In this document: positions 49,101-52,100 of the stretch, piece after piece | Layout of the letters: each line of letters begins with the position of its first letter | Position numbering within the stretch: position 1 is the first letter of the stretch | Origin: Macrostomum hystrix | Taxonomy: Eukaryota; Animalia; Platyhelminthes | NCBI GenBank assembly: GCA_950097015.1 | Contig: CATNEN010000037.1 | Span: forward strand, 2,294,001 to 2,358,000 | Direction of reading: 5' to 3' | Length of the DNA stretch: 64,000 bases | The notes under the pieces: model-generated | The model's input: only the letters and a program-made list of their open reading frames with translations | Database searches by the model: none | Told to the model about the DNA's origin: nothing | Program-made: the position numbers and the translations under genes

Positions 49101-52100
49101 TGATAACGTAATTGAAGCTGTCAAAATTAGTCCACATTGGTTATTATTTAGCTGCAAGTTTGGAAAACAGGTGGCTGCCAAATGTCTTGCAGCAGTGCAA
49201 AACTGCATCAGACCAGCTCCAAGACAGTTAAAGCCCGATAAACACGAATGTACTCTGCAGAAAAAGCATAGGCTTTCCGCCCAGGCAGGCCGCACTATTG
49301 CACAGACTTTATACTTTTATACTTTTACTTTTTATACTTTATACTTTATACTTTATAAATTATACTTTTATATTGCACTATTCCATAACTAAACTTAGCC
49401 AAATCGTGACGCACAAAAGCATTACAAGAAAAATAATTTGATAAGAATTTGATTTTCTCAAATAGAGTTTCTGATTCAAAGCATCAATTAACTTTATAAC
49501 ATCTTAATCAGAACAGAAAACAAAGCAGGTTTGTTGGCACTCGCACCGAGATGACCTTTGGTCCGGGGCGGCGGTGGGTAGGGGCGTCAATCTTAGTTGT
49601 GAAGATATTTCAGGTATGGGTAGGATCCAGATTAACAAAAAAACAAACCAAAGATAAAAAACTACAAGACGAAAAAAACAAACCTAAAACAGGGTTCGGT
49701 TAAAGGACACGAAAACTTCGAATTTGTTTTGTTCTGCTAATAAAGTGAAGAAAAAGGTGAAGGGTAGAATAGAAACTGCTGATTGAAGGGTTCAAAATCT
49801 GCTTACTCCATGTTACAGCTAAGTTATCAAATTTTAAATAGATAACGAAACAAGTTAGAAAACACGGTTAGTAAATGAAGTCTGGTAACGGAATTAACAG
49901 TTGACGGGACTCAAAGCTGCAGTTAGATAGTAATTTGGATACTAAATGTGCCAGTTAAACAATGTCTGCCGATCGGCTAGACTGTCTGTCCAATGGTTCA
50001 CCTTGAAAGTTCTTGCAAGCACTTATCTACTGGCGCCATTGCATGAACCACGGTCATTGTCACGTGATTCTTTGTGGGAAGGAGTGGCCGGAATCGAACC
50101 ACAAGAGACAGAAAATAGAAGCATGATGAAATCTTCGGCGGGGGGGTTGCGAGGGTCGGAGAGAGGCGTGGGGTGGGTCGAGCGAATCCGAGCGAACCTA
50201 TTTTTTTCTCCTTTTTTCCCTCTAAGTTGCATTCCATTCATGGAGCTCTGCTGGACCATAGTGGGTGGAGGCGGAGGGACAGTTCCTATTTGGCAATTGG
50301 TCCGTTGTTCAACTATGGATAGAAGCGGAAAGTTGTGCCTTGCCTTCTTTCCCAAGACTTCATCCGAACCCCAAACCTCCACCCCACCTAGCTGTGCCTC
50401 GTGCGACTCCATACACACACACATATATATAGAGGCCACGTTGGACTGGCGTACAGCTTAAGCCGGAATCTATTTTTCTCTAAAAAAGTTTCTTCCTTAT
50501 ATTCAGGCGTCAAATTTGGTTGCTAACGCGATTCTGACACGCTGCAAATTTATATAATACAGCAATAATGTCCCGAACTGTGCAACTTGGCCTGCTAATC
50601 CTGCTAGTCACAATGAGCCTGACCAGCGGAATGGGTAAGATAGCTATAGTCTAGTGTGCAATTGCACTGAGCAAATGGCAACGATCAACAGACTGACAAT
50701 GCTGTTTAATCCTGTCTGCGTCTATTTTATTACAGAGATTTCCCGCCGCCAAGGTCGCTCAGTGTACGAAGATCCTAACCTCACAGCGTACGATGACGAT
50801 TGCCCAAACGGACTGATCGCTTATCAGAAATTTAACAGATGTGAGTTCATTCAATTTCTCCTTATCTAAAAACCAAGTACATAAAAAACTAAATAATAAA
50901 AATTGCACCTTCCAACGCAGCCAACGGCGTATTCGATTGCGCAATCAAAACTGCCGAGATCTGTTTCGCACTGTGCGAAATAATGGACAGCAGCAACTGG
51001 GATGTTAGCAATACGTTGAACCTGCGCGATCAGACTGATCGAGACAAATGGTACTGCCGTGCCATGCCCGGCTACCCAACCAGGCCTTGCTTCTTCAAGC
51101 CAAAGCAGGAAATCGAAGCTGATGTGGCTCGCATGTATGAGCCGGAGTGGAGGTAGAGGATTCAGCCCCGCCAGCCCCTCCACCCTCGCTCTCTCTCTCT
51201 CACCATAACAACAAGACAACCTCGATGCTGAATTTCTGACTATTTCCAGAGCGAGAATATTGTTCCAAAATGCGCACGCCTATTTACTGTATACTATGTG
51301 TACTATGTATAAGTTGTGTGGTTTTCTGTGTCTTGTTTTACCACATTCTCCCTTTTTCTCTTCCTCGTTTACTTGCTGTTTTAGTGTGTATTTTTTTCTT
51401 GCCTATTTGTGGATTTTAAAAGACCTCCTGAAAGAAAAACTTTATTGTCGTAAAAATAATCTCTACCTAACACTCACACACACCCACACATTTACAATAG
51501 AAAATTAATACGAATGTAAATCGAATCGTGAGAATAATTAATTAGCCATTTAGTTTTTTTCAAAGCACAACAGCAATACAAGTAGCATTGGCAGCTTCCT
51601 GAAGAACATACTTTTATTATTTATTTTTTCCCCTGATTATTTTTATTTCCACACTCAGCAAAAGGACGCAAGGCTTTGGTTTTTTTAAATCAGTGTAAAA
51701 ATAAATTTAAATAATTGTTAAGTATGTTTCTTAGTAACCAAACACCTCCAATGCGCACAGATTTAAGCTGCCCCATTCATAGTTTTTTTTTCTGATCGCT
51801 GGGTTTTAGCGAACAAAAGTACACTCAGCTGATTACAAAAAATACATGAATATATAAACACTTAAGGTTTATGGCATTGACAAAAAGCTGCTTATTTTGT
51901 TATTTTGTGTAAACTAAACAAATCTCACGAGATTAAATAGGAAGAAATTTTTAGGAGAATAGAAGAACTTGTCAACAAAGATCAGACGATGTTGAGTGAT
52001 CGAAAAAACGGAAGAAATACAAAATGAACCTGAAAAACTATATCAGATTTTATATACTATACTACTGAAGTAGTAATCAAGTAGTAACCGAAGCTTATTA

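Follow-up and report, generated by a model that had tools for sequence, protein, structure and literature searches.

The window, a stretch of 64,000 nucleotides of Macrostomum hystrix DNA (contig 37:2294001-2358000 of a 220-Mb assembly), was found to contain a small gene with three coding exons, which lies on the opposite strand within an intron of TOP3B. It very likely codes for protein and is expressed from a TATA-type promoter of its own, and its product would be a secreted and probably convertase-processed member of a genus-restricted protein family. The exon structure, transcription and splicing, the strand, the coding constraint, the family and the synteny were established by the analyses described below.

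A three-exon gene and its predicted product

A first-pass annotation had postulated a hidden gene of three exons with canonical splice sites, two junctions in phase 1 and a product of 135 aa, and all of its statements about the sequence were verified. The features of the gene are the following:

50424..50431, + strand: TATA-like box (tatatata), 26-33 nt upstream of the first contig base at 50457
50457..50567, + strand: 5′-UTR, 111 nt, without an upstream ATG, from the contig extent
50568..50634, + strand: coding exon 1, 67 nt (22 codons and 1 nt), start codon and putative signal peptide
50635..50735, + strand: intron 1, 101 nt, GT..AG, phase 1, 40% GC, skipped in contigs of the public runs X3 and X5
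50736..50840, + strand: coding exon 2, 105 nt, short putative pro-segment, RRQGR↓S, NLT, first Cys (DDCPNG motif)
50841..50920, + strand: intron 2, 80 nt, GT..AG, phase 1, 30% GC, skipped in contigs of the public runs X1 and X5
50921..51156, + strand: coding exon 3, 236 nt, five of the six Cys, conserved core, stop codon TAG
51157..51875, + strand: 3′-UTR, about 719 nt, from the contig extent, with AATATA 26 nt before the contig end

The three joined exons have a length of 408 nt and encode 135 aa followed by the stop codon TAG, without any internal stop, and both junctions are in phase 1. The splice donors read G/GTAAGA and T/GTGAGT, and the acceptors end with TTACAG/ and ACGCAG/. The GC content of the exons is 49-54%, versus 30-40% in the introns. 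It had also been claimed that no open reading frame captures the product, and this was confirmed, because the + strand ORFs listed over the gene are fragments with lengths of 28, 71 and 57 aa, none of which includes the whole product.

The N-terminus of the protein is hydrophobic (11-aa Kyte-Doolittle maximum 2.5) and is followed by RRQGR at residues 26-30. Six Cys are found at positions 45, 64, 72, 76, 103 and 114, and two sequons are present, NLT at 37 and NRS at 56; in the relatives described below only one of the two recurs at each position. Each element of the architecture that had been proposed, i.e. the signal-peptide-like start, RRQGR, the six Cys and the NLT and NRS sequons, is thus present in the joined translation, and the architecture is supported.

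Transcription, splicing and promoter

A search for public runs yielded eight (X1-X8) from two studies, and contigs of four of them were aligned to positions 50000-52000. The designation of the eight runs as RNA libraries is an automatic label ('RNA?') and a guess. Run X5 contained a single contig of 1238 nt that aligned to 50457-50633, 50735-50840 and 50921-51875, so that both junctions are present in one contig. A contig of run X3 skips 50634-50734/5 (junction 1), a contig of run X1 skips 50841-50920 (junction 2), and a second contig of run X1 reaches 50634 and then continues with nine unaligned letters, AGATTTCCC, identical to the start of exon 2. The two + strand junctions that had been predicted, 50634/50736 and 50840/50921, are both represented in public-run contigs from two studies. 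In the four aligned runs, contig cover was absent from both introns, from 50000-50456 and from 51876-52000.

An intron-less copy was not found in the genome, which contains only one match of 100%, and all five paralogues have introns. Because the genome lacks an intron-less copy, mRNA is the best explanation for the spliced contigs. When read on the + strand, the skipped parts begin with GT and end with AG, and therefore the transcript was assigned to this strand. Within the spliced transcript an ATG first occurs at position 112, corresponding to 50568, and the 135-aa ORF that begins there is the longest of the transcript. In contigs from other individuals two coding differences were observed, 50997 C>T and 51108 G>A, both of which are synonymous third-position changes, and the UTR contained indels. 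The gene is real, transcribed and spliced, with the proviso that the library type is a guess.

In four of five gene types of the family a TATA-like box precedes the ATG by 130-170 nt. TATAWAW is matched exactly in the window gene, in the contig-39 tandem copies and in the orthologue of Macrostomum lignano; the paralogue on contig 33 has only a weaker 'tatatta' at about -143, which was seen by eye and was not found in the scan. The TATA-like box and the fourfold tandem amplification described below would be in line with strong, cell-type-specific expression of secretory genes. Within 400 nt upstream of the ATG, the promoters of the window gene (50280-50330) and of the M. lignano orthologue share TCCATTCATGG and CAACTATGGA, which are possible conserved regulatory motifs.

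The host gene TOP3B and its surroundings

The host gene TOP3B is encoded on the - strand. Its open frames match consecutive segments of the Pfam profile Topoisom_bac and, in addition, Zn_ribbon_TOP3B:

56595-56942, - strand: Topoisom_bac positions 35-110 (Pfam)
53901-54479, - strand: Topoisom_bac positions 103-243 (Pfam)
53261..53722, - strand: open frame with TOP3B coding exon 6, the upstream flank of the intron, Topoisom_bac positions 243-343 (Pfam)
43816..44718, - strand: open frame with TOP3B coding exon 7, the downstream flank of the intron, Topoisom_bac positions 339-411 and Zn_ribbon_TOP3B

Three further upstream exons have Toprim-like sequence. The small gene lies antisense in a TOP3B intron of about 8.5 kb, between coding exons 6 and 7 as found. 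The antisense nesting in TOP3B intron 6, which had been part of the original proposal, is therefore borne out by - strand exons with Topoisom_bac matches on both sides.

The introns and the 3′ flank of TOP3B (42000-59500) are packed with minisatellites, which create long spurious repetitive ORFs:

42000-42574: 20-nt unit, 28 copies
43425-43821: 30-nt unit, 13 copies
48111-49032: 31-nt unit, 29 copies
52425-53276: 30-nt unit, 28 copies
54390-55433: 37-nt unit, 28 copies
58973-59480: 22-nt unit, 23 copies

Elsewhere in the window, strand asymmetry is extreme at 10001-14000, with a GC skew of +0.67 to +0.73 and an AT skew of about +0.3 (2-kb windows), and it flips to -0.37 at 14001-16000. The strand asymmetry at 10001-14000 is probably due to a purine-rich satellite. 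An open frame at the end of the window (63769-63999, - strand) resembles the C-terminal part of an SPOP-like BTB/BACK protein.

A family of six genes in the M. hystrix genome

A genome search with exon 3 revealed five paralogues with identities of 56-59%, of which four are arranged in tandem on contig 39 and the fifth lies on contig 33. Together with the window gene the family thus comprises six genes in M. hystrix, and a profile search of the genome did not yield any more distant paralogues below an E value of 1. All five paralogue gene models consist of three exons, and both introns are found at the positions of the window gene and in phase 1. The Cys spacing C-x18-C-x7-C-x3-C-x26-C-x10-C is identical in the window protein, in both paralogue types and in three M. 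lignano proteins. Each paralogue has a signal-peptide-like start, which is followed by a basic motif that ends with R↓S. Pairwise comparisons among the three M. hystrix gene types yielded dN/dS values of 0.17-0.28, with dS being saturated.

The four tandem copies are located at 13259501-13323034 of contig 39 and are spaced by about 13, 43 and 7 kb. Two of them have identical coding sequences, the others differ by single residues, and the flanks are far more diverged than the genes.

Relatives in Macrostomum lignano

A profile of three exon-3 peptides was compared exhaustively with 1.84 billion protein representatives using HMMER. The exon pieces and the orthologue PAA53968.1 served as queries for the searches and fold predictions. 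Three matches were obtained, two of which are M. lignano proteins, with E values of 1.5e-34 (Mlig005456) and 3.7e-18 (A0A1I8H482). The third, a bacterial-type repeat protein, was rejected as a chance match, because its ten SNWDVSN-type repeats hit a low-complexity N-W-D-V-S-N stretch of the profile. A word-based protein search did not reveal relatives beyond these M. lignano proteins. The gene had been considered possibly lineage-specific, and the HMMER search agrees with this, since relatives were found only in Macrostomum among the 1.84 billion proteins. It had further been considered possibly unannotated, with no recognised family; the first-pass annotation was right insofar as the family is uncharacterised and genus-restricted, but an orthologue and a paralogue have already been deposited for M. 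lignano as hypothetical proteins.

The orthologue group consists of PAA53968.1, PAA58107.1 and PAA76633.1, which are named 'hypothetical protein BOX15_Mlig005456g1-3' (UniProt A0A267DXF5 / A0A267EB48). Mlig005456 (PAA53968.1) has a length of 137 aa, versus 135 aa for the window protein, and the identity is 64% over the full length. Both proteins have the putative signal peptide, the basic site, the Cys spacing and a C-terminal E-W ending in common. They differ in that Mlig005456 has the full furin consensus RSRR↓S and in that only the first sequon is common to both. At the gene level, Mlig005456 keeps intron 1 (99 nt) but, unlike the window gene, lacks intron 2. Because all five paralogues have intron 2, the simplest explanation is a loss in the M. 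lignano lineage, and a lineage-specific loss thus appears likely.

A second M. lignano group, Mlig014950g1 / Mlig029358g1 (PAA58035.1 and others; UniRef A0A1I8JBX1 and A0A1I8H482), belongs to the same family and has the same Cys spacing. It is 50% identical to the window protein, to which it is paralogous, and it is closest to the tandem copies on contig 39 (56% identity). A0A1I8H482 (133 aa) does not contain the segment around the sixth Cys that is present in its cluster mate of 143 aa, and it looks like a faulty gene model.

On the M. lignano contig NIVC01002993.1 a distance of about 1.5 kb separates the Mlig005456 gene from TOP3B exon 6, and the two are encoded on opposite strands. TOP3B exons 6 and 5 are 89.5% and 88.7% identical, respectively, between M. 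lignano and the window; the TOP3B exon downstream of the intron is outside of the 10-kb flank of the M. lignano gene. As both small genes adjoin TOP3B exon 6 on the opposite strand, they were regarded as positional orthologues. In terms of sequence, the window gene belongs to a six-gene family found so far only in the genus Macrostomum, and Mlig005456 (PAA53968.1) is its positional orthologue. The comparison of the two orthologues yielded a dN/dS of 0.21 overall, 0.10 for the Cys domain and 0.61 for the signal/pro region (first 44 codons), and judged by these values the window gene is under purifying selection.

The M. lignano gene ids did not occur in any searchable full text, and they were absent from the supplements of PMC5977470, PMC5816591, PMC7336406 and PMC8662610, in which the ids may differ and the files are perhaps incomplete.

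Putative secretion and convertase processing

The N-termini of the family contain one or two charged residues, a core of 10-14 Leu/Val/Ile residues and small residues at -3/-1. All members have a Kyte-Doolittle maximum of 2.4-3.3 within the first 25 aa, and the putative cut is preceded by T-x-G, V-x-A or similar, as judged by a heuristic. A conserved helix-like segment around Cys 64-76 is also fairly hydrophobic (19-aa Kyte-Doolittle maximum 1.4-1.9) and could conceivably be a membrane-inserted helix. A C-terminal retention or anchor signal was not seen in the window protein.

In all members the putative signal peptide and the basic motif are separated by a variable stretch of between 8 and about 20 residues. 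The basic motifs are the following:

Window protein: RRQGR↓S (minimal R-x-x-R, Gly at P2)
M. lignano orthologue Mlig005456: RRSRR↓S (full furin consensus)
M. lignano group Mlig014950/Mlig029358: RLKR↓S (full furin consensus)
Contig-39 paralogues: RRLVRR↓S
Contig-33 paralogue: RGIR↓S

Furin-type convertases cut at R-x-(K/R)-R and at minimal R-x-x-R sites. Enzymes of this kind are encoded in the M. hystrix genome, in which P_proprotein domain matches above the cut-off were found at several loci, indicating P-domain convertases. Because the basic motif is kept within an otherwise fast-changing region (dN/dS 0.61), it can be argued that it is used. The earlier proposal of a convertase-processed secreted peptide thus gained comparative support, in that the R↓S motif is present in all paralogues and in the M. 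lignano orthologues while the flanks and the residue number vary; cleavage itself remains a prediction.

Alternatively, the protein could be secreted without convertase processing, so that the mature form keeps MEISRRQGR and the basic cluster is incidental or has another role. The site of the window protein, which is only R-x-x-R with Gly at P2, and R-G-I-R in the contig-33 paralogue would be compatible with this. However, the R↓S motif is kept in all five distinct sequences despite differing flanks and spacing, two of the relatives have the full furin consensus (RSRR↓S and RLKR↓S), and the genome encodes convertases, so that secretion without processing seems somewhat unlikely.

The preferred reading remains that of a processed precursor. 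A cleavable signal peptide, about 21 aa in length, would direct the 135-aa precursor into the secretory pathway, and a furin-type proprotein convertase would then probably cut at RRQGR↓S and remove a pro-segment of roughly 9 aa. The predicted mature part, which would be released, comprises 105 aa with a mass of 12.3 kDa and a pI of 4.5; its six Cys could form three disulfides, and it is possibly N-glycosylated. Secretion, convertase cleavage and disulfides of the window protein are thus predictions.

Family and fold searches

The window exons and four M. lignano proteins were searched against Pfam with E values up to 10, and the only match was a chance match of PAA53968.1 to a HAT repeat (E 0.18). 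A profile search of the PDB retrieved only an antibody light chain (E 1.4). A feature-based search of the ESM Atlas gave no usable match for exon 3, and the best value for PAA53968.1 was 0.78; both results are uninformative. AlphaFold2 predictions were performed for the orthologue with a family alignment of 10 rows, and the models had pLDDT values of 46 for the full protein and 51 for the trimmed Cys domain. With these low-confidence models Foldseek did not find a match in the PDB, and a shape search of the Atlas retrieved only unrelated bacterial families (TM 0.27-0.41). Models with pLDDT values of 46 and 51 do not allow any conclusion about the fold.

In UniRef, two relatives carry automatic names, 'Kp4 domain-containing' for A0A1I8H482 and 'G_PROTEIN_RECEP_F2_3 domain-containing' for A0A1I8JBX1. 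Both candidates were rejected. For the KP4 killer toxin (Pfam PF09044 Kp4) there was no Pfam match at E values up to 10 and no KP4 chain in the PDB profile search. For the HRM domain of family-2 GPCRs (PF02793 / PROSITE PS50227) there was likewise no Pfam match at E values up to 10, and no receptor ectodomain was among the PDB matches.

Discussion

Several functions can be envisaged for the predicted secreted protein. It could be an extracellular signalling ligand, hormone- or growth-factor-like, that is released from a pro-protein. The predicted combination of a signal peptide, a short pro-segment, a basic site and a disulfide domain would be in accordance with a ligand, as would the single-copy state of the window gene, its conserved synteny and its strong purifying selection. 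Yet the Pfam and PDB searches revealed no similarity to a known hormone or growth-factor family, and the occurrence of one paralogue in four tandem copies would be unusual for a hormone. A ligand function is thus regarded as unlikely. A bolder version, which we consider doubtful, is that the six-Cys domain represents a novel fold and defines a Macrostomum-born family of convertase-processed extracellular effectors, in which the single-copy syntenic TOP3B branch would be a signalling ligand and the tandem branch an abundant secretion.

A role as a seminal-fluid or prostate-gland protein that is transferred at mating appears very unlikely, even though Macrostomum prostate transcripts are described (PMC5977470) as often small, secreted and devoid of homologues outside of the genus, and the tandem amplification of one paralogue would fit an abundant secretion. 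The strong constraint on the Cys domain (dN/dS 0.10, dS above 1) contrasts with the rapid evolution that is reported for reproduction-related genes of Macrostomum. The absence of the M. lignano ids from the expression and seminal-fluid supplements also speaks against this role, albeit weakly, since the ids may differ.

A relationship to the KP4 killer toxin or to the hormone-binding extracellular domain of family-2 GPCRs, to which the automatic UniRef names of A0A1I8H482 and A0A1I8JBX1 point, is highly improbable. The contradictory names were given to two members of one 90% cluster, which are 98% identical over their common residues (one is truncated), and neither Kp4 nor HRM was found in Pfam scans of the full-length proteins at E values up to 10, nor in the PDB. 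The antisense location of the transcript within an intron of another gene might suggest a non-coding RNA antisense to TOP3B, with an ORF that arose by chance. This is hardly credible, because five paralogues and two groups of M. lignano genes share the frame, the intron phases and the six Cys, the dN/dS values lie at 0.1-0.28 and the paralogues lie outside of TOP3B; the pattern of conservation already contradicts this reading.

A protein-coding gene for a secreted and probably processed protein remains the best explanation. Our guess is that the window protein acts extracellularly as an abundant gland or epithelial secretion and not as a cationic antimicrobial peptide, against which its acidic charge (pI 4.5) speaks.

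A gene that had been missed by ORF-based tracks has now been validated for the annotation of M. hystrix, together with five paralogues and exact exon coordinates, and the example indicates that reasoning from splice sites and phases in the sequence can recover short genes with several exons. It adds a constrained, genus-restricted family of predicted secreted proteins and offers a clean pair for comparison, i.e. one copy in conserved synteny inside TOP3B versus one lineage that has been amplified in tandem. The family could be studied further in M. lignano, a species amenable to in situ hybridisation, RNAi and transgenesis. Small secreted proteins that are rich in Cys and confined to one lineage are common; this is a sound gene call of modest novelty, not a discovery of a new type, no question of long standing is opened by it, and the orthologue was already in GenBank as a hypothetical protein.

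With its considerable length of 105 aa and its acidic charge, the predicted mature part of the window protein differs from typical cationic antimicrobial peptides and short knottins. The small secreted Cys-rich pro-proteins that are cut by furin-type convertases include many venom peptides, hormones and growth factors. No relation in sequence or fold to any member of this class was found, and the window protein likewise appears to be composed of a signal peptide, a short pro-segment, an R-x-x-R/dibasic site and a disulfide-rich mature domain.
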